IMG/VR virus record: IMGVR_UViG_3300032334_001259
Location: 186,001 to 250,000 of that record
Direction: 5' to 3' (one strand)
Length of the DNA: 64,000 bases
Below, piece by piece: positions 3,394-22,715 of this stretch. Both the position numbers and the translations under genes were made by a program. A model generated the notes under the pieces. The model was given only the letters and a program-made list of their open reading frames with translations. It did not search any database and was not told the origin of the DNA. Positions within the stretch are counted from its first letter, which is position 1; every line of letters begins with the position of its first letter.

Positions 3394-3396
3394 CGC

Positions 3397-4338: not shown

Positions 4339-4342
4339 CCAA

Positions 4343-4348: not shown

Positions 4349-4364
4349 ATATTGGGTAATCAGC

Positions 4365-5993: not shown

Positions 5994-6013
5994 TGAAGTA
6001 ATTCATAAACCGA

Positions 6014-6019
6014 TAAATA
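6014..6019 (+). promoter_or_regulatory. Late promoter core TAAATA
   Basis: Intergenic, before 6041. Confidence 0.6.
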
Positions 6020-6040
6020 ATTTAAAACAGGTTTTAAAAC

Positions 6041-7252: not shown

Positions 7253-7261
7253 GGATAAAAT

Positions 7262-7654: not shown

Positions 7655-7657
7655 ATA
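7652..7657 (+). promoter_or_regulatory. Late promoter core TAAATA
   Basis: Overlaps the upstream stop codon, before 7677. Confidence 0.55.
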
Positions 7658-7676
7658 CCGTTGTGGGAATTTATAA

Positions 7677-8612
7677 ATGACATATGCCAGTGGCGGTATA
7701 ATCCAAGCATCAGATTTTAATACTCGTGTATCTGCAGTTAACGCATTGTGGGGCACTGGTGCTAATGCTAATGGATATGGTCAAGCAAGCACTGTTACTA
7801 CAACTTCTACTGGTACAGTTGTTCCTGCAACTGATTGGGCCACACTTATTGCACGTTTAACTTCTGCAAATCAGCACCAAGTAAACAATACCACTGGTAT
7901 TCCATCACAGCCTACTTCGGGTGGTATTATTACCTATCTTAATACATTAGACAGTGCTATTTCTACAATTAACACAAATAAACTTTCAAGTTTTGCACAA
8001 CAGGCGGCTGCTGCTTTTACAGCGGCACAAACTGCTTCTAGTAGCACTGCATGGACAACAAGTGCACAACGCACATTTACTGCAACTTTTGCTAATGCAG
8101 ATGCTGCACGTTACTTTTTTAATTCAAATGGTTATCTGGAAGTTAGTTTTGTCAATAATGCACTCGCTGGTAATAGTAAAAGTGATTATTGGCAAGCATT
8201 TTTAGCAAATGGTGTAAAACAACATATTTTAAGAGCAAATGCATCTTATTATACTGGAACTGGTTTTACTCCAAATACTAATTTGACTACACAAGGTTAT
8301 TATAACTTAACAAGAGGTCTTGCTACTTTCTTCCAAGTATATGATACTCCAAGTTCTGTTGATTATGTTAACAACTACATGAATATACAGTATGGCATTG
8401 GTAGTGCACAAAATGCTGGTGGTAATGGAGATAACGGTTCAGTTATCGTTATTAACGTTAATATGTTTGATGCTGCTGGTGACGTGTTAAACGATTCAGT
8501 TACTGGAAATACAGTAGTTCAAGTTCGTCCAGTTTACCCAGAAACAACTTATCTTACAACACAAAGTTGGGGCACTGTCACAATCGCTGCTAACGTCAAT
8601 ACTCAAGCATAA
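7677..8612 (+). CDS. Putative virion structural protein
   Basis: TAAATA at 7652; A/T/S/N-rich; ARYFFNSNG motif; end of the structural cluster. Confidence 0.55.
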   Translation: MTYASGGIIQASDFNTRVSAVNALWGTGANANGYGQASTVTTTSTGTVVPATDWATLIARLTSANQHQVNNTTGIPSQPTSGGIITYLNTLDSAISTINTNKLSSFAQQAAAAFTAAQTASSSTAWTTSAQRTFTATFANADAARYFFNSNGYLEVSFVNNALAGNSKSDYWQAFLANGVKQHILRANASYYTGTGFTPNTNLTTQGYYNLTRGLATFFQVYDTPSSVDYVNNYMNIQYGIGSAQNAGGNGDNGSVIVINVNMFDAAGDVLNDSVTGNTVVQVRPVYPETTYLTTQSWGTVTIAANVNTQA

Positions 8613-8642: not shown

Positions 8643-8648
8643 TTCAAT

Positions 8649-8969
8649 ATGACTCCAGAAGAACTACGTGAACGGGCTATTGACGCCTATAATCGTGATT
8701 TAGCAAAACAAAACATCCTTACTGCCATGGAATCACGCATGACAGTAAATTATTATGATGGTGTGTTTATTGTTACTCAAGAACTTATTAGTTTTTTAAA
8801 TGCTTGGCGTGACGAAGAAATTTATATGCTTGATGCTTATGATACACCAGTAAAAGTAAATGCTCATGTATTATTAATTCGCTGCAAGCAGCGTTGGCAA
8901 GAAGTTATGAATGAATTTGCTGTAGAATACGAAGAATATAAAAAGATTCGTAATGCAAGACAACTCTAA
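8649..8969 (+). CDS. Hypothetical protein, first gene of the glycosyltransferase/radical-SAM operon
   Basis: ORF overlaps the downstream gene. Confidence 0.6.
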   Translation: MTPEELRERAIDAYNRDLAKQNILTAMESRMTVNYYDGVFIVTQELISFLNAWRDEEIYMLDAYDTPVKVNAHVLLIRCKQRWQEVMNEFAVEYEEYKKIRNARQL

Positions 8970-9705
8970 AGGTTGTATCATATTTGCATACAACACAGAT
9001 AAAATCGATTATTTTAGTCAAGCGGTAGAAGCCGCTGATAGAGTAAATCATTTTCTTGATTTACCAGTTACTATTTTTACAAATGAAGAAAGAGAGTGTA
9101 AACACAATGTTATCATTACTGAAATTCCTCCAAAAAATTACAAACAAAGAAATATTTGGTACAACCGCAGCAGAACTGGAGCGTTTGATCTTACGCCTTA
9201 CAGTAAAACACTGGTGATTGATAGTGATTATTTCTTATGCACTGATACATTAAAATATCATATTGAAAGTCAAAAACCATTTTTAATTGCGAATGAAGTT
9301 TATAATCCAGTTAAAGGTGAGAAAACAATTTTTAATATTGGAAAAAGTCATGTTCCTATGATGTGGGCTACTATAATGATATTTGACAAAAGTGATGAAG
9401 CAAAACAAATATTTGAGTTTGCAAAAATTGTTGAAAAACATTATGACTATTATAGTAGGTTATATGGTTTTCATTATTCAAGTATAAGAAACGATTACAT
9501 TTTTAGTATAGCATGTCACGTAATGGGTGGTTATGGTTCTATATCTTATGCTTTAAAAAATTATCCTATTGTAAATTGCGATAGTCAAACATTTTATGAA
9601 AGTTTAGATAATAACAAACTTGTATACAAATATGCACATGATAAAATATACGGAAATAGATTACAAAATATAGATTTACATCTTATGAATAAAGGTCAAC
9701 TATGA
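8953..9705 (+). CDS. GT-A fold glycosyltransferase (GT8-like)
   Basis: TPYSKTLVIDSDY (DxD motif), RNDY, C-terminal HLMNK. Confidence 0.65.
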   Translation: MQDNSKGCIIFAYNTDKIDYFSQAVEAADRVNHFLDLPVTIFTNEERECKHNVIITEIPPKNYKQRNIWYNRSRTGAFDLTPYSKTLVIDSDYFLCTDTLKYHIESQKPFLIANEVYNPVKGEKTIFNIGKSHVPMMWATIMIFDKSDEAKQIFEFAKIVEKHYDYYSRLYGFHYSSIRNDYIFSIACHVMGGYGSISYALKNYPIVNCDSQTFYESLDNNKLVYKYAHDKIYGNRLQNIDLHLMNKGQL

Positions 9706-10544
9706 GTTCTGGTTACATATGTATTGCACAAAATAGTGGCGATGTAGATTATTTGCGTATGGCATATCTGCAAGCCTTAAGTTGTAAACTGACACAGACA
9801 ACATATAATAGTTTTAGTGTTATCGTAGATAAAGAAACTGCTGATTGTATAGAACAAAAATACATTGATGTATTTGATAATATTATTGTTATTAAAGATG
9901 ACCTTGCAAAAAATAGTAAAATTAAAATGCAGAACGAGTGTCAGGTTTTCAAGTATAGCCCTTATAAACAAACTATGAAAACCGAAGCAGACATGTTGTT
10001 TACTTCAAACTATGATGAGCTATGGTATGCTTGGAATGTTAGTAAGCAAGTTTTTTGTTCACATGTTTATACATATGACGGTCATTTAATCACAGATCGC
10101 AGTCAGCGTAAGTTGTTTGATGATAGTTTATTACCAAACGTTTATAGTGCTTGGACATATTTTTCATATGACTTGGAATGTAAACAATTTTATGATACAA
10201 TGCGTGTCATTATAGATGATTGGAATTATTACCGTGACAATTATCTTATAAACTGTCGTTATGATGAACCACGAACAGATGAAGTTTATGCACTTGCTTG
10301 TAAAATATTAGATATAAAATATAAAAGCAATGGTTTTGGGTTTGTTCATATGAAACCTAAACTTCAAAGAATTGCAACAAACTCAAGTTGGTCTGAAATG
10401 CTTTCATTTGAAGTTCATAACGATTTTGCACCAGTTATTGGTGGGTATAAGCAATCTAAACCACTGCATTATGTTGAGAAAACCTTTGTAACAGATGAAT
10501 TATTAGATAGATATGAGTATGAATTTAACAAAAGAAGAAGTTAA
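9702..10544 (+). CDS. GT-A fold glycosyltransferase-like protein
   Basis: SPYKQTMKTEADML (EAD in the DxD position), FVHMK, PLHY; paralogous to 8953..9705. Confidence 0.6.
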   Translation: MSSGYICIAQNSGDVDYLRMAYLQALSCKLTQTTYNSFSVIVDKETADCIEQKYIDVFDNIIVIKDDLAKNSKIKMQNECQVFKYSPYKQTMKTEADMLFTSNYDELWYAWNVSKQVFCSHVYTYDGHLITDRSQRKLFDDSLLPNVYSAWTYFSYDLECKQFYDTMRVIIDDWNYYRDNYLINCRYDEPRTDEVYALACKILDIKYKSNGFGFVHMKPKLQRIATNSSWSEMLSFEVHNDFAPVIGGYKQSKPLHYVEKTFVTDELLDRYEYEFNKRRS

Positions 10545-10740
10545 GGCTTGGTGGGATGAGTTTGAAAGAGAACTTGGAAAAATGGTAATGCCTTGTGTTC
10601 CTATGCCAGAACCTCCTCCGCCTCCACCTGTTTACAACCCAAGATGGCGGCATGGAAATACTTACTTTACACTTAAGAATGATATGCAATTTGCTGTTGA
10701 TAGTTCACATACAAACGCAATGGGCTGGAAATATGAGTAA
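10513..10740 (+). CDS. Small proline-rich hypothetical protein
   Basis: Fills the gap between overlapping operon genes; PMPEPPPPPP run. Confidence 0.45.
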   Translation: MSMNLTKEEVKAWWDEFERELGKMVMPCVPMPEPPPPPPVYNPRWRHGNTYFTLKNDMQFAVDSSHTNAMGWKYE

Positions 10741-11671
10741 TTTAGTTGATATAAGTGATCTTGATGTAATATTCTTAAGCTATAAAGAAACCAACGCTGA
10801 TAGCAATTGGTCTTATGTTCGTAGTTTTGTTCCGTGGGCAAAACGTGTTCATGGTATAGAAGGAAGTGATGCAGCCCACAAAGCTGCCGCATCAAAAAGT
10901 GAAACAGAGAGATTTATTCTTATTGATGGTGATAATCAACCAAACCCAGAATTTTTTAATCAACAATTAAGACTTAATGATGATAATAGTGAATGTGTAT
11001 TTCGTTGGCGTGCAAAAAATCACATTAATGGGTTATGCTATGGTAATGGTGGGTTGAGCAGTTGGACTAAAACTTTTGTTAATAATATGCGAACCCATGA
11101 AGCAAGTGACGGAAATACAGAAACAGCCGTTGAGTTCTGTTATTTTCAAAATTATTGGGCTATGCATGATGTTTGGAGTATAACATCACCAAATGGTAGT
11201 CCACAACAAGCATGGCAAGCAGGATTTCGTGAAGGTGTTAAACTTTGTCTTGACCGTGGTCGCCGTGTAAATCCAGAAGAATTTGAAAAGGCAACCTGGT
11301 TAGGCAATCGCACAAATCTTGTTATTTGGTGTAGTATCGGTGCTGATGTTGAATATGGCAAATATGCAATGTTGGGTGCTCGTCAAGGTGCTTTTAAAAC
11401 CATGTTCGATGATGATTGGGACTATACAGAAGTTCGTGATTTTGATAAGTTAGAAAATATTTGGAATGATAGTTTAGAATATAACGACAAAGAAAGTGAA
11501 ACGTTTGCAAGAATGTTGCGTAAACGTTTAAATCTTGATATAGTGACTTTTAATGCTGAACAAAGTAAATGGTTTAAAAATCATCAACGTACATATCAAA
11601 ATATTGATATTATGTTACCAGAAAGAGATGTAGGAAATGTCATCCGAAGTGCTGCTAGACAACTCTGGTGA
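10733..11671 (+). CDS. Glycosyltransferase-like protein (GT-A)
   Basis: Start moved to ATG 10733 (MSNLVD); DVIFLSY, AHKAAA, FILIDGDN (DxD), AGFREGVKL. Confidence 0.6.
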   Translation: MSNLVDISDLDVIFLSYKETNADSNWSYVRSFVPWAKRVHGIEGSDAAHKAAASKSETERFILIDGDNQPNPEFFNQQLRLNDDNSECVFRWRAKNHINGLCYGNGGLSSWTKTFVNNMRTHEASDGNTETAVEFCYFQNYWAMHDVWSITSPNGSPQQAWQAGFREGVKLCLDRGRRVNPEEFEKATWLGNRTNLVIWCSIGADVEYGKYAMLGARQGAFKTMFDDDWDYTEVRDFDKLENIWNDSLEYNDKESETFARMLRKRLNLDIVTFNAEQSKWFKNHQRTYQNIDIMLPERDVGNVIRSAARQLW

Positions 11672-13076
11672 TACTGCCACAGTTAACGAAGATAACACAT
11701 TAAAAAGTGATTTTCTAACCGCCGCTGAAAAAATGCAGCAGAAGTTAGGTAATTCACTTTGCCTTTCCAAATGGATGCAAACGAGTTTGCACCTAACAAC
11801 TGGTCATACTAATAGTTGCTACCATCCACCACTACATAGGATAAATGCAGATGATCTCACCGATAACCCCAGTGCACTCCACAACACTGAATTTAAAAAA
11901 ACGCAAAGACAGCGAATGCTACTTGGAGAACGCCCAGAAGAATGTAGTTACTGTTGGCGAGTTGAAGCCACAGGAAACTTATCAGATAGACATTACAGAT
12001 CGGGAGAACCTTGGGCTGCTAATAAGTATAATGAGATTCTTATTCAAGACCCCTTAACTTGGAATGTAAATCCAGCTTATGTAGAAGTAAATTTTAGTAA
12101 TGTTTGTAACTTACAATGTAGCTATTGTTCGCCACAATTTAGTAGTGCGTGGCAAAAGGAAATAAATGAAAACGGTGCTTATCCTACTTCTAATTCCCAC
12201 AATAGTCCTTCTTACTTTACTACTGATCGTAGAGTTATACCAAACAGGGAAAGTAATGTTTATGTTGATGCGTTCTGGCGATGGTGGCCAGAACTCTACC
12301 CAAACCTAAAACATTTTCGTATGACAGGCGGTGAACCACTGCTTGACAAAAACACTTATCGTGTATTTGATTATGTATTAGACCATCCTAAAAAAGATTT
12401 ACATCTAAACGTAACAAGTAACTTTAGCCAAGATGAATATGTATTTGAAAAATATCTCACTTATGTAAAGCATATGTGTGGTAATAAAGTGTTAGAGCAT
12501 TTCATGCAGTTTGTCTCTATTGATGGTTATGGTGAACGTGCTGAATATGGTCGTCATGGTCTTGATTTTAAACTTATGCAATCTAACGTTGAGAAGTTCT
12601 TAACAGATATACCAGGTCGTAATAGCGTAACTTTTATCATTACGATGAATGTGCTAAACATCACAAGTCTTAAAGAATTGATGCAATGGATACTTGAACT
12701 TCGTAACAAATACAATACAACGTATCAACGTGTTTGGTTTGATACTCCAATTCTTCGTGAACCTAAATGGCAATGTGTTGATATACTGCCAGAAAGTTAT
12801 GCTTGGTTCTTACAGAATATTGTTGATTGGATGAAGCCACAGACAGAAACGGTTGATACAAGATTTAATGGTTTTAAAGATTATGAAATAACTAAATTAC
12901 AACGTGTTGTAGATTGGATGCGTGAACATCACCGTGAAGATAATAAAGCTATGGCAGATTTTTATAAATTTTTTGCTGAACATGATAGCCGCCGCAAAAC
13001 TAATTTTTTACAAACCTTTCCAGAAATGGTAGAATGGTGGGATAATTGCAAATATTGGGCAGATAATGCGAAGTAA
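11637..13076 (+). CDS. Radical SAM protein 1 with N-terminal SPASM/twitch-like Cys cluster
   Basis: CNLQCSYC, TGGEP; N-terminal CLSKW...SCYHP...CSYCW. Confidence 0.9.
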   Translation: MSSEVLLDNSGDTATVNEDNTLKSDFLTAAEKMQQKLGNSLCLSKWMQTSLHLTTGHTNSCYHPPLHRINADDLTDNPSALHNTEFKKTQRQRMLLGERPEECSYCWRVEATGNLSDRHYRSGEPWAANKYNEILIQDPLTWNVNPAYVEVNFSNVCNLQCSYCSPQFSSAWQKEINENGAYPTSNSHNSPSYFTTDRRVIPNRESNVYVDAFWRWWPELYPNLKHFRMTGGEPLLDKNTYRVFDYVLDHPKKDLHLNVTSNFSQDEYVFEKYLTYVKHMCGNKVLEHFMQFVSIDGYGERAEYGRHGLDFKLMQSNVEKFLTDIPGRNSVTFIITMNVLNITSLKELMQWILELRNKYNTTYQRVWFDTPILREPKWQCVDILPESYAWFLQNIVDWMKPQTETVDTRFNGFKDYEITKLQRVVDWMREHHREDNKAMADFYKFFAEHDSRRKTNFLQTFPEMVEWWDNCKYWADNAK

Positions 13077-14424
13077 AAAACCAGAAGAATCTTTTTTAGA
13101 ATATAAACAACGTGTGTTAGATACAAAAAGTAAATCTTTTTGTGGTGCTAAATGGTATAATGCAACTATATGGCTTGGTAGTGGACAAACGACAAGTTGT
13201 CACCACCCACTTCCGCATACTATACCTGTAAATGAATTAGAAAAAAATCCAAGTGTATTGCATAACACATATCAAAAGAAGACTGAACGTGCAATGATGC
13301 AACAGGGGGAACGTCCAAAAGGATGTGAATATTGTTGGCGTATTGAGGATAACAGTGATATAGCTATCAGTGACCGTCCTTACAAAAGTATGATATATAG
13401 TGAAGAAGAATTGAACGAGGCATTTCGTCTACCATTTGATACTGACGTAAATCTTCGCACTTTGGAGATAGCCTTTGATAGAACTTGTAACTTTGCTTGT
13501 AGCTATTGTAATCCCGCTTTTAGTACTACTTGGGTTAAAGACATTAAAGTTAATGGACCATACGTTGACCTTGTTAGCGATGGTCGCAATCATTTTACCC
13601 ATATACATGATTCTTCTCAGCTATATAGTTTCTCTGATACGAATCCATATGTAGAAGCATTCTTTAAATGGTGGGAAACTGACCTATATAAGACACTACG
13701 TGAATTACGTATAACTGGTGGTGAACCACTTATGAGTGGACATACATGGAAGTTGCTTGATTGGTTTAAAAACAATCGTGGTAAAAGCCGAACGAAACTT
13801 GCAATTAACAGCAATCTTGGTATTGAACGAGAAAAACTTGTAGAGTTTGTAGATAATATTCGTGAATTGCCACACGTTGAAGTTTATACAAGTTGTGAAG
13901 CATTTAAAGAGCAAGCTGAATATATTCGTGATGGTTTAAATTATTATCAATGGTTTGATAATTTAGTTTACCTACAAAATAGTGGTGCTGTTAAACAATT
14001 ACACGTAATGGCAACTATTAATGGATTATGTTTGCCATCATTACCAAATTTTCTTGAACACATGATGGATTTTAAAATGGGTTATGGTCGTGATAGTTTA
14101 ACTGTTACACTTAACATTTTGCGTTTCCCAAGTTTTCAAAGTCCAATTGTAATGCCATATGGTATCAAAGAAGAATGCGCTGTTGCTCTTGAAAAGTTTT
14201 TAGAACGACATGAACATGGAAAATATTTGCATCAAATGGAAATTGAACATGTTAAACGTTTAATTCAATATTTACGTACAACAACAACTCCACATGAAGG
14301 TGCAAGTCACATTGATATTTTAGAAAAAGATTTTAAAAACTTCTATGAACAATACGACAAACGCCGTGGTAAAGATTTTATTGAAACTTTTCCTGATTTA
14401 GAAGATTGGTATAATGGCATATAA
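13066..14424 (+). CDS. Radical SAM protein 2
   Basis: CNFACSYC, TGGEP; N-terminal CGAKW...SCHHP...CEYCW. Confidence 0.9.
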   Translation: MRSKKPEESFLEYKQRVLDTKSKSFCGAKWYNATIWLGSGQTTSCHHPLPHTIPVNELEKNPSVLHNTYQKKTERAMMQQGERPKGCEYCWRIEDNSDIAISDRPYKSMIYSEEELNEAFRLPFDTDVNLRTLEIAFDRTCNFACSYCNPAFSTTWVKDIKVNGPYVDLVSDGRNHFTHIHDSSQLYSFSDTNPYVEAFFKWWETDLYKTLRELRITGGEPLMSGHTWKLLDWFKNNRGKSRTKLAINSNLGIEREKLVEFVDNIRELPHVEVYTSCEAFKEQAEYIRDGLNYYQWFDNLVYLQNSGAVKQLHVMATINGLCLPSLPNFLEHMMDFKMGYGRDSLTVTLNILRFPSFQSPIVMPYGIKEECAVALEKFLERHEHGKYLHQMEIEHVKRLIQYLRTTTTPHEGASHIDILEKDFKNFYEQYDKRRGKDFIETFPDLEDWYNGI

Positions 14425-15685
14425 CTATAACGGCAAAGAACCAATTAAAATTGCTGTTGACGATTTAACAGATTCTCAAAAACATTTAATCTTTGAGAAC
14501 AAATCATTTTGTATGTATCCTTGGATTCATCTTCATGCATTTCCAACAGGAGAAGCATATCCGTGTTGTAATACCGAGATGCCTGAACTTGTAGGTAACA
14601 CTCGCCATAATACAATAGAAGAAATTTGGCATGGATCGGCAATGCAAGATGTTCGTAATAAGATGCTTGCTGGTGAACCAGTAAAAGGTTGCAGTCGTTG
14701 TTATGAGCAAGAAGACAATGGTTTTTTCAGTATGCGCATGAGTGCTAATAAACACTTTGGACATCATATTGCACTGACAGACAATCCCACACCGCCAATG
14801 AAAATGATTTATTGGGATATACGTTTTAGTAATTTATGCAATCTTCGTTGTCGCAGTTGTGGTCATATCTTTAGTTCAAATTGGTATGATGATCAAGTTA
14901 AACTTGCAGGTGAAGAGTGGGGAAAAAATAACAAACGTATCAATTTTGCTGGTCGCAATGAAGATGATATTTGGAATCAGCTTGAACCGCAGATTGATAA
15001 TCTTGAACAAGTATATTTTGCTGGCGGTGAACCACTTATCATGGAAGAACATTACCGTTTGCTTAAAGAACTTATTAAGCGTGGTCGTCACGATGTTCGT
15101 CTCATTTACAATACAAACTTTACACAAACAGTTTATAAGAAAACAAATGTGTTTGAACTTTGGCGTGAGTTTAAAAGTGTAAGTGTTGGAGCAAGTTTAG
15201 ACGCAATGGGTAAACACGCCGAGTATATTCGCAAGAATACGGTATGGGCAGATGTTGAACGCAATCGTGAAGAAATGTTAAAGATATGTCCACGTGTAGA
15301 TTTTTATATAAGTCCAACATTAAGTGTTATGAATGCATTACACTTACCTACTTTTCATCGTGATTGGGTAGAACGTGGATTTTTAAAACCGCAAGATTTA
15401 AATATTAATATATTGCAAGATCCACCTCATTATCGTATTGATATACTGCCATTTCAATATAAAGTTGATGTGCAAGAACTTTATTTGGAGCATATTGATT
15501 GGCTTAAACCCCAAGATTACCTGAAACGAGCAACTGCTGGATTTGAAAGTGCAATTAACTTTATGATGGCAGATGATAAGAGTAATTTGCTAGAAAAGTT
15601 TATTACTAAGACAGTTCAACTAGATAAGATACGAAATGAAAATATTTTGGAATCCATTCCAGAAATGAGATTTATTCATGAATAA
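14414..15685 (+). CDS. Radical SAM protein 3
   Basis: CNLRCRSC, AGGEP; N-terminal FCMYPW...PCC...CSRC. Confidence 0.9.
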   Translation: MAYNYNGKEPIKIAVDDLTDSQKHLIFENKSFCMYPWIHLHAFPTGEAYPCCNTEMPELVGNTRHNTIEEIWHGSAMQDVRNKMLAGEPVKGCSRCYEQEDNGFFSMRMSANKHFGHHIALTDNPTPPMKMIYWDIRFSNLCNLRCRSCGHIFSSNWYDDQVKLAGEEWGKNNKRINFAGRNEDDIWNQLEPQIDNLEQVYFAGGEPLIMEEHYRLLKELIKRGRHDVRLIYNTNFTQTVYKKTNVFELWREFKSVSVGASLDAMGKHAEYIRKNTVWADVERNREEMLKICPRVDFYISPTLSVMNALHLPTFHRDWVERGFLKPQDLNINILQDPPHYRIDILPFQYKVDVQELYLEHIDWLKPQDYLKRATAGFESAINFMMADDKSNLLEKFITKTVQLDKIRNENILESIPEMRFIHE

Positions 15686-16841
15686 TTTTTGTGTATTACC
15701 ATTTACTAGTATTGAAGCAGATCCAATGGGTAAATGTAAGGTATGTTGTTTATCAAAAACTACTATACCAAATATTGACCTTAAAACTAATACATTAACA
15801 GAAGCATTTAACAGTGATTACATGCGTAATTTAAGACAACAATTTTTACAAGATGAAAAACCAAGTGAATGTGAACGTTGTTGGACAGAAGAAGCAAGTG
15901 GACGCACTAGTAAACGTATGCACAGCACTATGCGACTTCAAAAAATTTTGCAAAATAAATCTTTTACTAAAGATACTGATGGTGAACTTATTTTTCTTGA
16001 TCTTAAACTTGGAAATATTTGTAATTTGAAGTGTAGAATATGTGGTAGCTTTAGTAGCAGTAAATGGGCACAGGAAGAAATTGATATATTTAAAAATAAC
16101 AATACAGCACGTGAAAATCTTGAAAATGGACGTTGGCCACGTGAAGCAAACAATTTTTGGAAAGATTTAGCAGATTTATTATCAAATACAAAATATTTTG
16201 AATTTACGGGTGGCGAACCATTTCTTATTGACGAACACTTTACATTATTAGAAATTGCAGTCAAGATGGGTTATGCAAAAGATATTGAATTGCATTACAA
16301 TACTAATACTACTACTTTTCCTAAACGTGGTTTAGAATTGTGGCCAAATTTTAAATTGGTTGAAATTGCCCTATCAATTGATGATATGGGTAAGCGGTTT
16401 GAATATCAAAGATTTGGAACAAAATGGGAAACTACTCTTGAAAATTTAGAACGTTTTAGACAATTAAGACAAAACAATAAAAATATAAAGCTACAACTGT
16501 GTTTAACTGTTAATGTACTAAATGTTTACTATCTTGATGAAATTTGTAAATGGATACCAAAACAAAAATTTAATTATGTTTATTTTAACGTATTGCATGA
16601 TGCCTGGTATTTTAGTATCAAACATTTTACTCAACGTGCTAAGGATTTAGTTAATGAAAAATATAAAAATTATACTGGTTTTTACGCTGATGAAATAAAA
16701 AATTTAATAACATTTATGAATCAGGGTGTTAGTAGTGATGGAACTGATTTGGTAAGAATACTTAAGCAAAGTGACATACAGCGTAATCAAAAGTTTAGCA
16801 ATTATCATAGTGAGATAGCGGCGGCAATTGGTTATGAATGA
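15678..16841 (+). CDS. Radical SAM protein 4
   Basis: CNLKCRIC, TGGEP; N-terminal FCVLPF...VCC...CERC. Confidence 0.9.
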   Translation: MNNFCVLPFTSIEADPMGKCKVCCLSKTTIPNIDLKTNTLTEAFNSDYMRNLRQQFLQDEKPSECERCWTEEASGRTSKRMHSTMRLQKILQNKSFTKDTDGELIFLDLKLGNICNLKCRICGSFSSSKWAQEEIDIFKNNNTARENLENGRWPREANNFWKDLADLLSNTKYFEFTGGEPFLIDEHFTLLEIAVKMGYAKDIELHYNTNTTTFPKRGLELWPNFKLVEIALSIDDMGKRFEYQRFGTKWETTLENLERFRQLRQNNKNIKLQLCLTVNVLNVYYLDEICKWIPKQKFNYVYFNVLHDAWYFSIKHFTQRAKDLVNEKYKNYTGFYADEIKNLITFMNQGVSSDGTDLVRILKQSDIQRNQKFSNYHSEIAAAIGYE

Positions 16842-18126
16842 TTTTTGTTTGGCACCTTGGACCCACACATATATATCACCACAAGGTGAGCGTAGGTTAT
16901 GCTGTGCATCACGAGAACCCGCACAAAATTTTAAACAGTATATTGACACTGAACACGGAAATGGTGAATTTCAAGCCTTAGCACTAGAGGAATGGTGGAA
17001 TGGTGAACATATTAGAAGAATAAGAAAAGAGTGGTTATCTGGAACAATCCCAAAAGAATGTGAAGTATGCGATAAAAAGTTACTTAATACTTCTGTTTAT
17101 CGTGATTACTTTGCTCATCTCTTCGGTCATTTACGGAAGGATATTATTTCTTCTACTGACCATGAAGGTTATACAACCATAGAACCAATATCCTGGGATT
17201 ATCGTTATAGTAATGTATGCAACTTTAAGTGCCGTATGTGTGGTGACATGTTAAGTAGTGCATGGGAAGTTGAAGTGCGTAAAAATGATATGGTTGACAT
17301 AAAAAATCCAAAGAACTATTGGATGCAACCAAAGAATCGCCATGCTATTCGTGATTTTACTCGTGATGTAGTAATACCAGAATTTCGTGAAGCTATAGAA
17401 AACAAAACTGTGCGTGAAATCTATTGGGTAGGCGGTGAACCACTATTGTATGACGAACACTGGACTTTCATGCGCCGCATCGTTGAATTAGGTTATGCAG
17501 ATCAGGTCCGTGTGCGGTATAATACGAATTTAAGTTATACTAAAGATAAAGATGGAACTCTTTGGGATTTATTACACCACTTTCCACATTGGGAAATATG
17601 TGCAAGTTTAGATGGAACAGGAGATATTGGTGAGTATATTAGAAGTGGTCTTAATTATAATGATTGGTTGGATAATTTTAAACAAGGAATCCAACATCAG
17701 CGACATGTTCGCCAAATGCGTATTGATTTTACTCTTACTTTGCCTGGTTTATATGATCTGGCCAATATTATTAATCTTGTTGATTCTCTTAATGTTTCCC
17801 TATTAAGTAAAGTAGTATTTGCTTTTAGCCCTGATATATTATTAAGTCCATTAGCTTTACCTCGTAATATATTAATACCACTTATAGAAAATATACAAGA
17901 AAATATAAAATCAAAAATAACTTACAGAACTCAAAGTTTGTGGGATGTATTGGAACATCTTAAAACTCGTCAAACTTTTGAAGAAGAATTTCCTGACAAT
18001 TATAAACAAGAGGCAAAACGAGGTAAGGCGCATCTTTTAAAATTGGAATCTATTCGTAAAGATGCTAAAATAAAATTAGAAGATATCTTAACTGGTGATA
18101 CCTTAGATTGGTGGAATAGTATATGA
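16834..18126 (+). CDS. Radical SAM protein 5
   Basis: CNFKCRMC, VGGEP; N-terminal FCLAPW...LCC...CEVC; start moved to ATG 16834. Confidence 0.9.
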   Translation: MNDFCLAPWTHTYISPQGERRLCCASREPAQNFKQYIDTEHGNGEFQALALEEWWNGEHIRRIRKEWLSGTIPKECEVCDKKLLNTSVYRDYFAHLFGHLRKDIISSTDHEGYTTIEPISWDYRYSNVCNFKCRMCGDMLSSAWEVEVRKNDMVDIKNPKNYWMQPKNRHAIRDFTRDVVIPEFREAIENKTVREIYWVGGEPLLYDEHWTFMRRIVELGYADQVRVRYNTNLSYTKDKDGTLWDLLHHFPHWEICASLDGTGDIGEYIRSGLNYNDWLDNFKQGIQHQRHVRQMRIDFTLTLPGLYDLANIINLVDSLNVSLLSKVVFAFSPDILLSPLALPRNILIPLIENIQENIKSKITYRTQSLWDVLEHLKTRQTFEEEFPDNYKQEAKRGKAHLLKLESIRKDAKIKLEDILTGDTLDWWNSI

Positions 18127-19229
18127 ATGTTGTAATGACCCTTCGCAATCCGTTAGACAAAACAGATTTTTTAAATGTTTTTATTGAACCTAATGATACC
18201 CAACTTGCAAAAGATTGGCAAGCAGCATTGCAGTTTGAGATACAGCGCAACTCTATTTTGGAAAAAAATTATTGTTGGCATGGTTGGCCAAATGGTGCAA
18301 GAAACCTACAATATCTTACTAGCGAATTAAGTCGTCATGCACTTAACATATGGAAGTTTAACGAACTAGGAATCTGGCAAGGTTTAGGACTACCTAATAT
18401 TAAAATTGAAACTGTTTATACGCCTGAAACAGTTATGCTTCCGCTCACAGATGAACCTGATAGTGGTGGACCAAACCACGATGTTATGAATATAGTGCAT
18501 AATCATTTTGAACATCTGCAAGGAACTGTAGAAAATCTTAGTCCATACTACAAGATTGCACCACCAAATATAAAGTATAGCATAAGACAATTAAACAATC
18601 TTTGCCATGAGATTGAAACATTATGTTTAAGTTTGCGTAAGCAAAAACACAAACCAGATTGGATTCGTCCTAGCCAGATTACAACCTTTTTAAATGCTAA
18701 AAGATATAATTTAACAGATGAACATCGTAATGGTTTTTTAACAAATGGACATGACCGAAAGTTTGCACATGTTTATATGCATTGGACACAGATTGGCAAA
18801 ACATTACTTGAAGTATTTCGTGATGAAGATGCACCACACCTTAATCAAGTAACGTGTGATGCTATAACACATTTACAATATTACAGTGGCGAGTTTGATA
18901 TTGAATGGGGGCGTGATGTTTGTTATGGAAAACATGATTGGCATACACAAGAGATTGATAAGTTCAATGACTGGTTAAAGCGTGAAGGATATGACCCAAA
19001 CAATAAATCTTTAAGTCTTGGTTATCTTGAAATTGGTAAGATTGATCTTGAAATGAGTTTTGGAACCACTGACATTTCTACAATATGGGATGTTATGGGC
19101 GACTATCTTGACATATACAGCCTTGAAGTAGATGGAGACCATGCTATCTATGATTATAGTTGGGCTGACGAAAACCATGAACAACGCCAAATTGATTATT
19201 TGATGCCTGGTTATCGCAGTCATGTTTGA
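18123..19229 (+). CDS. Hypothetical protein, His-rich motifs
   Basis: Overlaps both neighbours; HNHFEHL, NLCHEIE, YMHW. Confidence 0.6.
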   Translation: MNVVMTLRNPLDKTDFLNVFIEPNDTQLAKDWQAALQFEIQRNSILEKNYCWHGWPNGARNLQYLTSELSRHALNIWKFNELGIWQGLGLPNIKIETVYTPETVMLPLTDEPDSGGPNHDVMNIVHNHFEHLQGTVENLSPYYKIAPPNIKYSIRQLNNLCHEIETLCLSLRKQKHKPDWIRPSQITTFLNAKRYNLTDEHRNGFLTNGHDRKFAHVYMHWTQIGKTLLEVFRDEDAPHLNQVTCDAITHLQYYSGEFDIEWGRDVCYGKHDWHTQEIDKFNDWLKREGYDPNNKSLSLGYLEIGKIDLEMSFGTTDISTIWDVMGDYLDIYSLEVDGDHAIYDYSWADENHEQRQIDYLMPGYRSHV

Positions 19230-20757
19230 TATAGTTTGGTATGATTACAGCGATGGTGATATTCAACATTTAATTGCGAAAGCTAAACAAAGTAGCAAAA
19301 CAGAATATGTTTGGCTTGCACATCGTCAACTAGATTATGTAAACTTTAATTTTCGTTGGATGCCTAACCGTCATCAACTACAATACAAACACGCTTGGCC
19401 AAGTCATAACAATGCAGAACATTATACTACATGGCTTATACCTGTTTATAATGATAGCGGAATAGTGCATCATGATCAACTCGTACCAACGATTGATACA
19501 AAATATTATGATACATGTTTGTTGAATACAAATAGTTTTGATAATGCACATACGGTAGATTTTCAAGTTCGTTTAATAACTACCATGCAAACTGCAATTG
19601 ATACCGCAGTTAAAAAATCAACCAAACCTTGGTTGTGGATTATTGCGGATTGTTGTGAGTATGATGGGTTTGATTTTAATTGGTTACCAAATAATCATGA
19701 GATGAATTATATTCACTGCTGGCCAAGTGGAACATGTGAAAAGGGTGATACATTTTTAATTAATGTTGATGCTTATAAACGAGGTGAACGCAATTATAAT
19801 TTTAATCATGAACCTATCAAACGTAAACGTTGGCCAAGTACAAAGGTTACGCATGATAGTTTGGTACAGGAACTTAATGCAACTCCTAGACTAAATGCAA
19901 TTTACACCGTATATTCTTATGTTGGATTTATAGATTATCCAGATGTTTGTCTGTGGGAAAAACGACCTGTGGTTAGTTTAAATCGTAGCAATAGCAGTTG
20001 TCTTGTTCCACGTGATTGTGTTGTAAAAAAAGAAATATACGAATATCCATATCTTATACGTGAAACAAGTTATGGATTTGATCTTGCAATCGATGTTATT
20101 TTTATTGAGAATGGTGAAAGTTGTGCAAAAGAAAATTATGAAAGATTGAAAAAGTTAGAACCATTGACAAAATACTGTGCTGGTGTAAATGGCAGATTAG
20201 CTGCATATAAAAATGCTGCAAACCAAAGTAACAGTGATTGGTTCATTGCTGTGTTTGCAAAGTGTCATGTGAAAGACAATTTTGACGATTTTGATTGGCA
20301 ACCAGATTTTTGGCAAGAACCTAAACATTATATTTTTTATAATCACAATCGTAATAATAATTTGACATATGGACACATGGCACCTATTGCCTACAATACA
20401 AAACTAATTTTACAAAATACGGGTGGTCTTGATATGACATTGGCGCAAATGCACACCACCGTGCCAATTTGTATAAGTGAAACCTATATTGAAGATGATC
20501 CATGGTTGACATGGCGAACTGCGTTTCGTGAGGTAATTAAACTACTTCATTATAGTAAGAATAATCCAAGCGTTGAAAATGAATATCGACTATGGTCATG
20601 GAAAAATATAACAAATGGAAATGATGCTATTTGGCAACAGCGTGGTGTTAAAGATGCAGAAGATTATTATAAAATGTGTGGCGACAATGAAGATGCACTA
20701 ATGTTGACAAGTGAATGGGATTGGTTGCAGGCACATTATTCATCTTTACAAAGATGA
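19222..20757 (+). CDS. Multi-repeat glycosyltransferase-like protein
   Basis: Three degenerate GT-A-like segments; C-terminal domain (DVIFI...WRTAFREVIKL) parallels 10733..11671. Confidence 0.55.
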   Translation: MFDIVWYDYSDGDIQHLIAKAKQSSKTEYVWLAHRQLDYVNFNFRWMPNRHQLQYKHAWPSHNNAEHYTTWLIPVYNDSGIVHHDQLVPTIDTKYYDTCLLNTNSFDNAHTVDFQVRLITTMQTAIDTAVKKSTKPWLWIIADCCEYDGFDFNWLPNNHEMNYIHCWPSGTCEKGDTFLINVDAYKRGERNYNFNHEPIKRKRWPSTKVTHDSLVQELNATPRLNAIYTVYSYVGFIDYPDVCLWEKRPVVSLNRSNSSCLVPRDCVVKKEIYEYPYLIRETSYGFDLAIDVIFIENGESCAKENYERLKKLEPLTKYCAGVNGRLAAYKNAANQSNSDWFIAVFAKCHVKDNFDDFDWQPDFWQEPKHYIFYNHNRNNNLTYGHMAPIAYNTKLILQNTGGLDMTLAQMHTTVPICISETYIEDDPWLTWRTAFREVIKLLHYSKNNPSVENEYRLWSWKNITNGNDAIWQQRGVKDAEDYYKMCGDNEDALMLTSEWDWLQAHYSSLQR

Positions 20758-21846
20758 AATTACAGTTTGAATAATATAATCAACTTGTTCATCAGTAAGA
20801 TGTGTATGACTTGGCAAACTAATTATTTTACCAGATAAAGATTCACTTTTAACACACTGATGTTGATTCCACTGTTTAGCAAATTTTTGAGTATGCAATG
20901 GATGTTTATAATGACTGCTATAATTTATTTTTGCATTTTTTAAGTAATTGCATGTTTTTTCATAATCGTTGGTTACAATTGGCATAACATACCAATTATA
21001 GAGATTTTGAAATGCAAATTTTGGAATTTTAATTTGATTGTGATTTGAAAATGCTTCACAATATTTTTTAATTATTTGGACTTTTCTTGTGAAAATTTTT
21101 TCATAATTTTTAATATTTGCTGTAATAAGTGCAGCTTGTATACTTGTTATTCTGGATGTAAATCCAACATTATCAATATTACTATCAAAACCATAAAAAG
21201 ATTTACCATTTGAGCAAATTGAATCTAATAATAATGTATCAATTTTGTTAGTGATGATTGCACCACCACCGCCAGCACCCCCAAAATTTTTGTAAGGATT
21301 AAAACTTATACAAATAGCATCTGCTATAGTTTGATCATAATCTTTTGTTGTTATACTAAAACTCTGTGCAGCATCAATGATAAGTTTTAAATTTCTCTCG
21401 TCACACCATTTCTTTAAATTATAAATGTCACAACCTTGACCATATAAATCAACGACTAAAACAGCACTTACTTCATTAGCATACAAATTATAAACACGAG
21501 TAAGATCATTTAAATCTAACAACCAACTGTCATCAATATCAACAAATGTTGGAATACAATTAGCATTTAAAACAGACTGCGCAGTAGCTGCATATGTCAT
21601 TGTTGGTATTAATATTCTTGAATCTTTTGGAAGATTTAACGATAAGATACCTGCATGTAATGCGGCCGTGCATGTGCTTGTTAATTGCACACTTGCATTA
21701 TTATATAAATTACTAATAAATTTTTTTAATTCAATCTCATGTTGACCACGATAAACTTCACCGTATTCTAAAGTAAATTTTAAATTTTTTAAAATTTCTT
21801 CATTATTGTCTTGATATTGTAAATCCAAATCCGAAAATTTTATCAT
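20746..21846 (-). CDS. DegT/DnrJ/EryC1/StrS family PLP-dependent sugar aminotransferase
   Basis: VDLYGQ, IIDAAQS, SFNPYKNFG (PLP lysine), ISLPSH. Confidence 0.9.
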   Translation of the reverse strand: MIKFSDLDLQYQDNNEEILKNLKFTLEYGEVYRGQHEIELKKFISNLYNNASVQLTSTCTAALHAGILSLNLPKDSRILIPTMTYAATAQSVLNANCIPTFVDIDDSWLLDLNDLTRVYNLYANEVSAVLVVDLYGQGCDIYNLKKWCDERNLKLIIDAAQSFSITTKDYDQTIADAICISFNPYKNFGGAGGGGAIITNKIDTLLLDSICSNGKSFYGFDSNIDNVGFTSRITSIQAALITANIKNYEKIFTRKVQIIKKYCEAFSNHNQIKIPKFAFQNLYNWYVMPIVTNDYEKTCNYLKNAKINYSSHYKHPLHTQKFAKQWNQHQCVKSESLSGKIISLPSHTHLTDEQVDYIIQTVISSL

Positions 21847-22715
21847 AGTAATATTTTTATACCACTTTCTAAATCAACTTTGGGGGTATAACCAAGATAT
21901 CTAACAGCAGTGCGTGTATCCATTGCACCACGACGAGGCATGTCCTCTGGTAAATCACGACCACAAATAATTTCACTTTCGCTTTGTGTCAATTCAACGA
22001 TAAGTTTAGCCGCATCATACAAACTTACAGCTTGACCATAACTCACATTAGCAATAACTTTGCTTACTGGTGATGTGGCAGCATTAACGATTGCTTGTGT
22101 AATATCACTTACATATGTAAAGTCAAGTTTAGCTAATGGATCATCTACATTAATTGGTTCATTATTTCTAGCTGATAATATCCATTTACTGATTACTCTG
22201 TTAGGATTATCACCAATTCCATATGCAGCCGTTGGTCTTGTGATAACCCAATTCTTTGCAATATCCTGAACTAATCGTTCACATGCAAGTTTAGCTTTAC
22301 CGTAATCATTAATGGGACGAAGTGGATCATCTTCACGAACAGTTCCAACCCAATTTCCATAAACCATGCTACTGCTTATATAAACAAACTTTGCATTTGG
22401 GTATTTGGTTAATAGATATACAGTTGAATTAATAGTGTTTTGCCAAGCATTGCCAATTTCTTTTGCAAAACTTGCTTGGTTAGGATGGCAAGCAAGATGA
22501 ACAATAACATCTACATCTTCTACAATGGTTTGTGCACAATCACAATTTAACCAATCATCATAACCATAATCCATACGACGACCACGATCAAGATATAATT
22601 GTGTTGTAATAAAACGTAGGTCATCAACAATTGTTACCTTATGTTTTTTATTCTTAAGTGAATTTACAACATGATGACCAATAAACCCAAAACCACCCGT
22701 AACTAAAACGTGCAT
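21843..22715 (-). CDS. NAD-dependent NDP-sugar epimerase/dehydratase (extended SDR)
   Basis: VTGGFGFIG, ISSSMVYG, YGKAK, DFTYVSD. Confidence 0.9.
   Translation of the reverse strand: MHVLVTGGFGFIGHHVVNSLKNKKHKVTIVDDLRFITTQLYLDRGRRMDYGYDDWLNCDCAQTIVEDVDVIVHLACHPNQASFAKEIGNAWQNTINSTVYLLTKYPNAKFVYISSSMVYGNWVGTVREDDPLRPINDYGKAKLACERLVQDIAKNWVITRPTAAYGIGDNPNRVISKWILSARNNEPINVDDPLAKLDFTYVSDITQAIVNAATSPVSKVIANVSYGQAVSLYDAAKLIVELTQSESEIICGRDLPEDMPRRGAMDTRTAVRYLGYTPKVDLESGIKILL

Follow-up and report, generated by a model that had tools for sequence, protein, structure and literature searches.

We analyzed a 64,000-nt stretch of DNA (the window; positions 186,001 to 250,000 of IMG/VR record IMGVR_UViG_3300032334_001259) of a 338-kb freshwater jumbo phage. 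Directly after the tail-fibre genes, at 8649-20757 (+), we observed a 12.1-kb run of overlapping genes: A106, B250, C280, c75, D312, five radical-SAM (rSAM) genes (R1-R5), E368 and F511. The neighbouring genes overlap by 4-35 nt. The run converges on a DegT aminotransferase and an SDR sugar epimerase/dehydratase. The first-pass annotation had described this operon as four GT-like ORFs and five radical-SAM paralogues following Ser/Thr/Asn-rich fibres, and this observation was confirmed, with the corrections given below. The same gene order recurs in about 80 independent contigs, which is more than chance.

Genes of the cassette and its surroundings

The upstream structural module (8..8612, +) consists of ORFs 8-2707, 2707-3393, 3397-4338, 4365-5993, 6041-7252, 7262-7654 and 7677-8612. 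ORFs within 3397-7252 hit PHROG tail-fibre and virion protein families. Four fibre-type ORFs (3397-4338, 4365-5993, 6041-7252 and 7677-8612) have S+T+N fractions of 0.31-0.36, while the genome mean is 0.197. The 310-aa family homologous to 7677-8612 occurs upstream of the cassette in 63 related loci. We treat this module as context and as the candidate glycosylation target, not as a part of the enzymatic cassette.

The first gene, A106 (8649..8969, +), encodes a small protein with no family hit. Its orthologues were found in 66 loci and in Ralstonia phage RsoM2USA (ORF354). The alignment shows a conserved folded protein (invariant G38, D62, P67, N88 and R101) with no hypervariable or Cys-rich core, so it is not a RiPP precursor. 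B250 (8953..9705, +) and C280 (9702..10544, +) are paralogues (hhalign of B250 against the C280 profile, 99.3%) and putative glycosyltransferases of GT-A/GT8-like type. Neither gave a Pfam hit, and the match of the C280 profile to glycogenin (GT8) over residues 8-110 was weak (E = 0.002). Atlas features for C280 point to nucleotide-diphospho-sugar transferase, Glyco_transf_8 and Nucleotid_trans (0.96-0.98). D90 and D92 (DSD) of B250 are invariant in 31 orthologues, and E95 and D97 of C280 are invariant. RsoM2USA ORF353 is a homologue of B250.

The fourth ORF of the first-pass annotation (10595-11671, GTG start) had to be corrected. Based on the sequence and on gene sizes in related loci, it is a 75-aa ORF, c75 (10513..10740, +), followed by a 312-aa gene, D312 (10733..11671, +). 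The c75 product is small and proline-rich, with homologues in about 17 close loci. In more distant relatives the same slot is occupied in 54 loci by a family of different length (~115 aa), which may or may not be homologous to c75.

D312 is a putative glycosyltransferase with a predicted GT-A fold and a C-terminal helical domain (AF2 model, pLDDT 86.6), and it is the most conserved non-rSAM gene of the cassette. The top Foldseek hit was the chlorovirus PBCV-1 capsid glycosyltransferase A64R (E = 1e-4, prob 1.0), followed by WrtF, TarS/P, SunS/ThuS and SpsA. Structural comparison (VIA) gave Z of 8-9.8 over residues 4-154. The match is moderate (Z ≤ 9.8, TM 0.3-0.45), and nucleotidyltransferases share the fold. 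D65 and D67 (DGD), at the end of strand 60-65, are invariant in 30 orthologues (mean column identity 67%). Among 50,697 phage records a D312 homologue was found only in RsoM2USA.

E368 (18123..19229, +) is the last gene of the conserved core and is present in 66-67 related loci. The annotation of four GT-like ORFs was supported for three of them and partly for one, F511. E368 is not GT-like and gave no Pfam, PHROG or NCBIfam hit. Its AF2 model (pLDDT 88.9) is a predicted cyclophilin-like barrel with a long helical insertion. Foldseek found no PDB match, a wider VIA comparison found cyclophilins, McbB and KslB (Z about 7-8.8), and AFDB holds unnamed or DUF695 cellular homologues (TM 0.72-0.81). 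F511 (19222..20757, +) is a variable accessory protein, as its length and presence differ among relatives. BLASTP of D312 against F511 showed that residues 290-505 are a D312 paralogue (E = 3e-12), but IAVFAKC stands in place of LIDGDN and the DxD motif is lacking. Atlas found only viral hypothetical clusters for this protein.

F511 overlaps by 12 nt the stop end of the convergent DegT/DnrJ/EryC1-family PLP sugar aminotransferase gene (20746..21846, -; Pfam 3.7e-57). This protein scored below every NCBIfam equivalog cut-off, which leaves its specificity unassigned, and a homologous family occurs in about 29 of 84 related loci. The next gene encodes an NAD-dependent NDP-sugar epimerase/dehydratase of the SDR type (21843..22715, -; Pfam Epimerase 5.6e-32, GDP_Man_Dehyd 3.1e-21), with only generic NCBIfam hits, found in about 26 related loci. 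Both genes are accessory. They are absent from most distant cassettes, so NDP-sugar tailoring is not a core function.

The first-pass annotation had also placed a cupin isomerase, a methyltransferase, an amidinotransferase and another GT elsewhere in the window. The cupin (33297-33650, -) was confirmed. The amidinotransferase was only a sub-threshold ADI hit (40695-41825). The methyltransferase and the further GT were not found among the ORFs scanned, which were not all the ORFs of the window.

Five radical-SAM enzymes of family NF033640

All five proteins contain CX3CX2C and belong to NCBIfam NF033640, the twitch domain-containing radical SAM proteins (N_Twi_rSAM), with 292-400 bits against a cut-off of 170. 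They are 21-32% identical to each other. A sixth protein, encoded elsewhere in the genome, also scores far above the cut-off. In this family the auxiliary-cluster twitch domain precedes the radical-SAM barrel. The family is an annotation class, and we could find no characterised member.

R1 (11637..13076, +; 335.7 bits) has conserved Cys42/61/103/106 and C157-X3-C161-X2-C164, and a paralogue-specific Cys281 (96% conserved). It forms its own orthologous clade (SH-aLRT 99), sister to R2. R2 (13066..14424, +; 307.8 bits) has Cys26/45/87/90 and 141/145/148, with an extra Cys322 (98%). Its clade has support of 100, and the single RsoM2USA rSAM (ORF349) groups with R2. R3 (14414..15685, +; 400.1 bits) is closest to the family consensus. 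Pfam detected SPASM at 33-97 before Radical_SAM at 137-288. Orthologues of R3 at 49-93% identity lie in 80 IMG/VR loci, and its clade (support 100) groups with bacterial homologues. R4 (15678..16841, +; 342.6 bits) groups with homologues from Bdellovibrionota, Myxococcota and Bacteroidota, and there are 10,161 cluster representatives at E ≤ 1e-3 and 1,503 at 1e-30. R5 (16828..18126, +; 292.3 bits) has clade support of 100 on a long stem and an extra Cys258 (100% conserved). It is fused to R4 in some relatives, and in one related locus (L008) an 834-aa double-rSAM ORF occupies the R4+R5 position. Each of the five anciently diverged enzymes is a separately conserved orthologue.

A profile of the N-terminal domain alone hit only BtrN, the 2-deoxy-scyllo-inosamine dehydrogenase, among PDB entries (E = 0.0037), with all four Cys aligned. 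BtrN and the related twitch enzymes HygY and AprD4 act on carbohydrates. The setting here is likewise carbohydrate-type, and a DegT-family aminotransferase is nearby, as in 2-deoxystreptamine pathways. However, the twitch domain of BtrN is C-terminal and core similarity is very low. No member of NF033640 has a known substrate, and similarity of fold or motif to BtrN does not fix the chemistry.

These data also bear on whether the rSAM enzymes act on protein rather than sugar, as twitch/SPASM-type maturases that cross-link, epimerise or oxidise residues of fibre or other phage proteins. The GTs would then act separately, for example in S- or O-glycosylation of the same protein, as in glycocins. 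Most characterised SPASM/twitch enzymes are peptide maturases, and weak core hits include YydG and SkfB. The structural neighbours of D312 include the S-glycosyltransferases SunS and ThuS, and each paralogue keeps one extra conserved Cys, as radical peptide epimerases do. On the other hand, there is no plausible precursor peptide, as A106 is a conserved folded protein and c75 is not conserved across the clade. The N-terminal domain matches BtrN specifically and not peptide maturases, no RRE-type domain was detected by Pfam or NCBIfam, and the bacterial context described below is carbohydrate/lipid-like rather than RiPP-like. We consider this reading unlikely.

Conservation of the cassette in phages and bacteria

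The uncharacterised cassette A-B-C-D-R1..R5-E keeps its order in about 80 environmental jumbo-phage contigs of IMG/VR, and conserved synteny with fibre genes was also found in two ENA contigs. In the cultured phage RsoM2USA (MG752970, ORF354-347), homologues of A, B, C and D, one R1/R2-type rSAM (34-36% identity) and a D-like protein lie in the same order directly after the tail/baseplate module. It has one radical-SAM gene instead of five and no E368. All these genes are annotated as hypothetical and were not discussed in the paper on this phage. Related cassettes add a NodU/CmcH-type carbamoyltransferase, a SAM synthetase and a PNP_UDP_1-family protein, which we infer to be a 5'-dAdo/MTA nucleosidase. 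Copies of such SAM-supply, salvage and sugar-tailoring genes lie elsewhere in the genome studied here.

In bacteria (Chitinophagales, Chryseobacterium, Bdellovibrionota, Myxococcota and Microthrixaceae MAGs, and Reichenbachiella faecimaris), the same family forms tandem arrays of 4-7 paralogues, including R3-like and R4-like members. The arrays sit next to DXD glycosyltransferases, GT2, carbamoyltransferases and SDR epimerases. Their neighbours also include UbiA prenyltransferase, KAS III, GDSL acylhydrolases and B12-rSAM. No homologues of A, B, C, D or E occur in the true bacterial loci. The first-pass annotation had stated that absence of linkage between these rSAM genes and GT or fibre genes in related phages would count against its reading; such linkage was clearly present.

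We considered whether the five rSAM genes may be an independently acting auxiliary-metabolic array (for example for cofactor or lipid chemistry) that merely sits between unrelated GT genes in a conserved genome backbone. The genome is rSAM-rich, with 11 rSAM-domain ORFs including B12-binding ones elsewhere, and marine T4-like genomes with 12 rSAM genes have been reported (PMC5332604). The rSAM cluster of the same family in Vibrio phage K566 has unrelated neighbours and no A-E. However, the overlapping reading frames suggest co-translation, the A-B-C-D + rSAM unit survives in the very distant RsoM2USA with only one rSAM retained, and GT linkage recurs independently in bacteria. We find the absence of a single pathway improbable.

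Proposed function of the cassette

The first-pass annotation had proposed a pathway that builds an unusual radical-tailored glycan on virion proteins, with DNA hypermodification or host-surface remodelling as alternatives. This interpretation was partly supported. The link of these rSAM enzymes to sugar chemistry now rests on comparative evidence and not only on adjacency in one genome, while the target remains an inference.

Hypermodification of phage DNA to evade host restriction is disfavoured, although not excluded. Phage GTs and radical-SAM/PLP enzymes are used in base-hypermodification pathways, and a thymidylate synthase and DHFR lie next to the DegT/SDR pair. However, this ThyA passes the NCBIfam thymidylate-synthase equivalog cut-off, is paired with DHFR as in T4, and is the only ThyA-family gene in the genome, so no hydroxymethylase is evident. 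No TGT/DpdA was found, and a search for TET/JBP, for which the control was uninformative, gave no hit. B, C and D are of GT-A type with the nearest matches on protein and glycan acceptors, and the rSAM family forms arrays in bacteria without phage context. We regard this as the least likely reading.

A non-virion glycoconjugate is another possibility, namely a host envelope glycan or glycolipid (for superinfection exclusion or receptor masking) or a free glycoside-type small molecule produced during infection. The bacterial arrays beside UbiA, KAS III, GDSL acylhydrolases and DXD GTs look like glycolipid or secondary-metabolite chemistry, and NodU/CmcH carbamoyltransferases classically act on small-molecule sugars. 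The genome carries further scattered sugar genes, namely the cupin of mannose-6-P isomerase type, a GDP-mannose-dehydratase-like SDR and a DctP binding protein. Against this, no cassette protein has a transmembrane segment, and no Wzx flippase, Wzy polymerase or polyprenyl-phosphate transferase lies in the operon, which favours a cytoplasmic, soluble acceptor. The phage cassette lacks UbiA and KAS III, and its position directly after the structural genes, on the same strand, is conserved even in RsoM2USA. This alternative appears unlikely, although less so than the others.

The reading we tentatively favour is that the region is a conserved enzyme cassette of a clade of freshwater jumbo myoviruses, which most likely assembles and then radical-tailors a sugar structure in the cytoplasm of the infected cell. 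Our analysis shows the co-linearity of three soluble GT-A-type putative glycosyltransferases (B, C and D) and a DxD-less D paralogue (F) with the five rSAM enzymes, the canonical SAM cluster and BtrN-like four-Cys twitch domain in each of these enzymes, their separate conservation, and the accessory genes in relatives, including DegT and SDR. The activities themselves are inferred, as is expression, which is probably late (no RNA run was listed). In this view, the GTs place ordinary host NDP-sugars on an acceptor, and the five rSAM enzymes each abstract a hydrogen from a different sugar C-H. They would use the fully ligated auxiliary cluster as an electron sink, or a paralogue-specific Cys as a hydrogen donor. 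This would oxidise, epimerise or deoxygenate distinct positions, as BtrN, HygY and AprD4 do, and the keto products would then be open to amination (DegT) and the hydroxyls to carbamoylation. A106, c75 and E368 are not explained by this scheme.

A similar arrangement is found in virus-encoded virion glycosylation, namely PBCV-1 A64R and its partners and mycobacteriophage GT operons, where soluble GT-A enzymes lie next to structural genes. Those systems are not known to contain radical-SAM enzymes. What differs here from the NF033640 annotation class is that five distinct subfamilies are fixed in one phage operon together with GT-A genes. That the acceptor is a virion protein is inferred more weakly, from position, from the soluble nature of all the proteins and from the analogy with A64R. 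Nothing in our data shows a glycan on a fibre, and adjacency to fibre genes is conserved within one phage lineage and could be inherited genome order rather than functional coupling. In summary, these results suggest a soluble pathway that most likely builds and chemically edits an unusual sugar structure. Virion proteins are its likeliest target, most plausibly one of the Ser/Thr/Asn-rich fibres encoded immediately upstream, and the product would then be a decorated receptor-binding or shielding surface.

Gene content of the cassette and its surroundings

We analyzed bases 186,001-250,000 of a 338,435-bp virus record with direct terminal repeats. The GC content is about 35%, and the sequencing runs that share sequence words with the region are freshwater, lake or pond metagenomes. 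The first-pass annotation had described five tandem radical-SAM enzymes embedded in a glycosyltransferase operon directly after the tail-fibre genes, and this observation held. From 8649 to 20757 the plus strand carries twelve reading frames whose ends overlap by 4-35 nt. The fourth ORF as first listed (10595-11671, GTG start) is better read as two genes, a 75-aa ORF (10513-10740) and a 312-aa gene starting at 10733, which fits the sequence and the gene sizes in related contigs. Therefore the operon consists of A106, B250, C280, c75, D312, the radical-SAM genes R1, R2, R3, R4 and R5, E368 and F511. It converges on a DegT-family aminotransferase (20746-21846, minus strand) and an SDR epimerase/dehydratase (21843-22715, minus strand), behind which lie thymidylate synthase and DHFR. 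The upstream genes (8-8612) are structural. Several of them gave PHROG tail-fibre or virion hits, and four fibre-type ORFs contain 31-36% Ser+Thr+Asn, against a genome mean of 19.7%.

We wanted to see whether known families could be assigned to the genes that do not encode radical-SAM enzymes. Pfam, PHROG and NCBIfam gave nothing for A, B, C, D, E and F, and profile searches of the PDB with D, B and E found nothing meaningful. Searches of a protein-cluster atlas with F and E returned only viral hypothetical clusters or no usable hit. B250 and C280 are paralogues (hhalign 99.3%). Neither matched the Pfam GT8 family PF01501, and the C280 profile matched glycogenin (GT8) only weakly, at E 0.002 over 103 residues of the nucleotide-sugar-binding half. 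The language-model neighbours of C280 in the atlas were nucleotide-diphospho-sugar transferase, GT8 and Nucleotid_trans clusters (0.96-0.98), carrying PF01501 and PF03407. B keeps an invariant D90-x-D92, while C has E95-x-D97. The GT8 assignment of both proteins is weak.

D312 is the best conserved gene outside the radical-SAM set (mean column identity 67%). Its AF2 model (pLDDT 86.6) has a GT-A fold in residues 4-154, and the top Foldseek hit was the PBCV-1 A64R glycosyltransferase, which glycosylates the chlorovirus capsid protein (E 1e-4, prob 1.0). The list that followed was dominated by GT-A enzymes, and VIA structural comparison gave Z scores of 8-9.8 over the same residues. The invariant D65-G-D67 lies at the end of strand 60-65, where GT-A enzymes carry DxD. 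Nucleotidyltransferases of the same fold also matched, so catalysis by D312 is inferred. F511 carries a D312-like C-terminal half (E 3e-12) in which the DxD is replaced. E368 folds confidently (pLDDT 88.9) but had no Foldseek match in the PDB, and an exhaustive structural scan gave only a cyclophilin-like barrel with a helical insert at Z about 8. AlphaFold DB holds unnamed cellular relatives of E368, and it is not a glycosyltransferase. A106 is a small, conserved, evidently folded protein. None of the cassette proteins has a transmembrane segment.

Further, we examined how the operon might be transcribed. A search for RNA evidence returned no run. A promoter and terminator scan gave counts equal to shuffled expectation and so says nothing about transcription units. 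No T4-type late promoter motif lies near the operon. In the whole window the T4 late-promoter motif TATAAATA occurs once, against 9.4 +/- 2.9 expected from shuffles. It is therefore depleted, and late transcription probably uses another signal despite the T4-like DNA polymerase at 36419-39082.

The first-pass annotation had also placed a methyltransferase and another GT elsewhere in the window. Neither was found among the ORFs scanned, which were not all of those present. Scattered sugar- or guanidino-related genes were a cupin of mannose-6-phosphate-isomerase type (33297-33650, minus strand), an ADI/amidinotransferase-like protein (40695-41825, minus strand; sub-threshold, with three paralogues in the genome) and, outside the window, a GDP-mannose-4,6-dehydratase-like SDR (genome 314383-315417, positions 2383-3417 of the genome stretch L099). 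The phage encodes a DctP-family TRAP-transporter solute-binding protein (42182-43135, minus strand; Pfam 1.6e-38), which is an unusual auxiliary gene. A MoxR-type AAA ATPase is paired with a DUF2201 metallopeptidase/VWA protein just beyond td/frd (25373-27928, minus strand). A GIY-YIG + NUMOD3 homing-endonuclease-like gene (43595-44254, minus strand) and a second NUMOD3-containing ORF (59081-59743, minus strand) lie among replication genes. There is also a single 2,845-aa ORF (48949-57486, minus strand), and a ClpA/ClpB-like AAA+ C-terminal module (62827-63957, minus strand; NCBIfam ClpA 1.1e-130, below the equivalog cut-off) runs towards the end of the window.

Five radical-SAM enzymes with an N-terminal twitch domain

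We wanted to establish to which family R1-R5 belong. The CX3CX2C motif, which binds the SAM-cleaving [4Fe-4S] cluster, and a GGEP motif of the SAM-binding GGE type are invariant in all six paralogues of the genome and 100% conserved in 49-67 orthologues of each. Pfam Radical_SAM hits were obtained, three of five above the gathering score. All five proteins matched NCBIfam NF033640 (N_Twi_rSAM, "twitch domain-containing radical SAM protein") above the curated cut-off of 170 bits (R1 335.7, R2 307.8, R3 400.1, R4 342.6 and R5 292.3 bits), and a search of the genome found the same five plus one more at 201.9 bits. This sixth member, at 270.7 kb, lies about 5-11 kb from two B12-binding radical-SAM genes (genome 270687-283600, outside the window; positions 2657-3775, 7582-9117 and 13668-15650 of the genome stretch L100, all on the minus strand). 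The genome has eleven rSAM-domain ORFs in all, two of them B12-binding. Since B12-rSAM genes also neighbour the bacterial arrays described below, this may be a second, related module.

Pfam placed a SPASM-type match at residues 5-97, ahead of Radical_SAM at 111-308, which is the reverse of the usual order. We built a profile of the N-terminal ~100 residues from the five enzymes and 15 distant relatives, and it hit only one structure family in the PDB, the twitch domain of BtrN (E 0.0037). All four invariant cysteines aligned with BtrN cysteines in the HMMER alignment, and in BtrN these are the four ligands of the auxiliary cluster. The spacing is 19/42/3 in R1 and equivalent in R2-R5, in agreement with the C-X18-C-X~42-C-X2-C spacing of a fully Cys-ligated auxiliary [4Fe-4S] cluster, the arrangement seen in radical dehydrogenases. 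Within 49-67 orthologues of each paralogue the four N-terminal Cys and the three SAM-cluster Cys are conserved, and each paralogue keeps one further Cys at a position of its own (92-100% conserved).

A rival possibility is that these enzymes modify protein residues rather than sugars, as SPASM-domain maturases with two auxiliary clusters and peptide substrates do. The enzymes lack the seven-Cys C-terminal SPASM motif of that group, as only four conserved Cys lie in the auxiliary domain and the domain is N-terminal. No adjacent precursor peptide with a leader and a variable core was found either. We rejected A106 and c75 as RiPP precursors, since A106 is a conserved folded protein and c75 is restricted to close relatives. 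The lack of a precursor and the BtrN-specific domain match weaken this reading, and we regard it as unlikely.

The five enzymes are only 21-32% identical to each other. In a tree with 12 related phages and 38 bacterial homologues (quick method, midpoint root), each formed its own clade (SH-aLRT 99-100). R1 and R2 are sisters, while R3 and R4 each group with bacterial sequences rather than with each other. So these are five old, individually maintained functions, not recent copies.

Distribution in phages and bacteria

We then investigated how widespread the cassette is. Megablast of the whole region against 50,697 phage records found no match. A first scan of genome contigs with R3 alone found nothing, and the six-paralogue alignment was too divergent to serve as a seed. 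Among metagenomic proteins, however, R3 alone has thousands of homologues, the best 120 at 62-93% identity, and a scan of IMG/VR returned 80 loci. Tblastn and ORF matching showed A, B, C, D, R1-R5 and E in the same order in essentially all loci that extend far enough. Orthologues were found in 66 loci for A106, 71 for B250, 75 for C280, 80 for D312, 84 for each of R1-R5 and 67 for E368, and the 310-aa fibre-like gene lies upstream in 63 loci. Contigs reach 316-344 kb. F, DegT and SDR are variable and are missing from most distant loci. In one relative R4 and R5 are fused and an extra rSAM is present. Two distant rSAM representatives lay on short, uninformative contigs.

Related cassettes insert three kinds of accessory gene, namely a NodU/CmcH-type carbamoyltransferase (33 loci), a ~190-aa PNP_UDP_1-family protein that we read as a 5'-deoxyadenosine/MTA nucleosidase (16 loci) and SAM synthetase (9 loci). 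This genome encodes homologues of all three elsewhere, outside the window: SAM synthetase (genome 319974-321056, minus strand), the carbamoyltransferase (323083-324540, minus strand) and the PNP_UDP_1 homologue, a probable MTA/5'-dAdo nucleosidase (287187-287627). These accessories fit heavy, stoichiometric SAM use and hydroxyl tailoring.

Among 50,697 deposited phage genomes only Ralstonia phage RsoM2USA, which is cultured, has a D312 homologue. Its ORF354-347 are A, B, C, a small ORF, D, one R1/R2-type rSAM and a D-like protein. They lie directly after its tail/baseplate module and are all annotated as hypothetical. Vibrio phages of the nt-1 and K566 type have family members at about 22-25% identity. 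We tested whether the neighbours of the K566 rSAM cluster are remote homologues of C, D or E, and they are not (hhalign probabilities 0.1-2.5%).

A pattern scan of species-representative genomes found 212 relatives. The closest seven loci (L101-L107) look like jumbo-phage contigs binned into bacterial or archaeal MAGs, labelled Haliscomenobacter, Legionellales, Rickettsiales, Betaproteobacteria TMED41, Porticoccaceae and Pacearchaeota. The first five (L101-L105) carry homologues of A-E and the cassette's carbamoyltransferase, and a sixth (L107) carries D/F-like genes and the carbamoyltransferase. True bacterial loci come from Bdellovibrionota, Chitinophagales, Chryseobacterium, Myxococcota, Acidimicrobiales and the isolate Reichenbachiella faecimaris, and they again show tandem arrays of up to seven paralogues. 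We scanned 96 neighbours within 2.2 kb in 21 long contigs. The commonest Pfam families, counted without a formal background model, were GT2 (6 neighbours), GDSL (5), B12-binding rSAM (3), UbiA (3), carbamoyltransferase (2), SDR epimerase (2) and GT1 (2). Tblastn found a carbamoyltransferase beside the array in at least ten bacterial loci. Three of four Bacteroidota arrays are flanked by a protein with a DXD "Gly_transf_sug" domain, next to or fused with UbiA. In the Bacteroidota MAG contigs L130, L155 and L177 the arrays comprise 4-7 family members and KAS III is also present, which suggests an uncharacterised glycolipid-type pathway in bacteria. So the pairing of this rSAM family with glycosyltransferases and carbamoyltransferases is not peculiar to the phage. 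The lipid-like bacterial neighbours support a rival reading in which the phage cassette makes a non-virion glycoconjugate or a small molecule, which we consider possible but unlikely.

Predicted function and significance

The evidence supports a pathway centred on sugar chemistry. In this view soluble GT-A enzymes would build on an acceptor, five BtrN-like radical enzymes would each modify a distinct C-H position, and optional amination, carbamoylation and SAM-supply functions would be added in some lineages. The gene order, the family membership of the five enzymes, their cysteine motifs and their separate clades come directly from the analysis, whereas expression, glycosyl transfer, the radical reaction on a sugar or cyclitol and the attachment of a glycan to any virion protein are inferred from sequence, predicted structure and position. 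Three things favour a virion protein as the target: the cassette's conserved place at the end of the structural module on the same strand, even in RsoM2USA; the absence of any membrane or lipid-carrier component; and the structural kinship of D312 to a viral capsid glycosyltransferase. We consider glycan building and radical tailoring somewhat more likely than not, while its placement on virion proteins is only a tentative proposal, and the combined statement falls a little short of being likelier than not. The interpretation in the first-pass annotation, a radical-tailored glycan built on virion proteins, is partly supported.

That the rSAM genes form an array acting independently of the GT genes is unlikely. 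DNA hypermodification, which the first-pass annotation had listed as an alternative, seems very unlikely. We looked for a base-activating enzyme encoded by the phage and found none: there is a single ThyA-family gene, it passes the thymidylate-synthase equivalog cut-off and is paired with DHFR, so we rejected it as a hidden hydroxymethylase. No TGT was found, nor any TET/JBP hit, although the control for the latter search was uninformative.

A more far-reaching possibility, which we regard as unlikely but which is not excluded, is that the five enzymes are position-specific glycan editors. After simple sugars are transferred to a fibre or other virion protein by B, C and D, each paralogue would oxidise, epimerise or deoxygenate a different carbon of the protein-bound glycan, with later amination or carbamoylation. 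This would create rare sugars in place, without dedicated NDP-sugar pathways. If true, it would define the first function for the large NF033640 family, including the 4-7-gene bacterial arrays, and a new mode of viral surface diversification.

Virus-encoded glycosylation is known from chloroviruses and some mycobacteriophages, and radical-SAM tailoring of sugars is known from antibiotic pathways. A phage operon that fixes five distinct radical-SAM subfamilies together with GT-A enzymes has not, as far as our literature searches reach, been described. Searches on the family name, on jumbo phages with radical SAM and on RsoM2USA found no account of this cassette, and the nearest remark is that some marine T4-like genomes carry up to 12 rSAM genes (PMC5332604).

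In summary, the enzymatic core of the cassette belongs to a large family with no assigned function (1,503 50%-identity clusters at E<=1e-30) that forms multi-gene arrays in several bacterial phyla and in a cosmopolitan clade of freshwater jumbo phages. As RsoM2USA carries a one-rSAM version, the question is open to direct study in a cultured phage. Assigning the chemistry would annotate thousands of genes, and it could also reveal how large phages decorate receptor-binding structures or otherwise spend substantial SAM and Fe-S resources late in infection.
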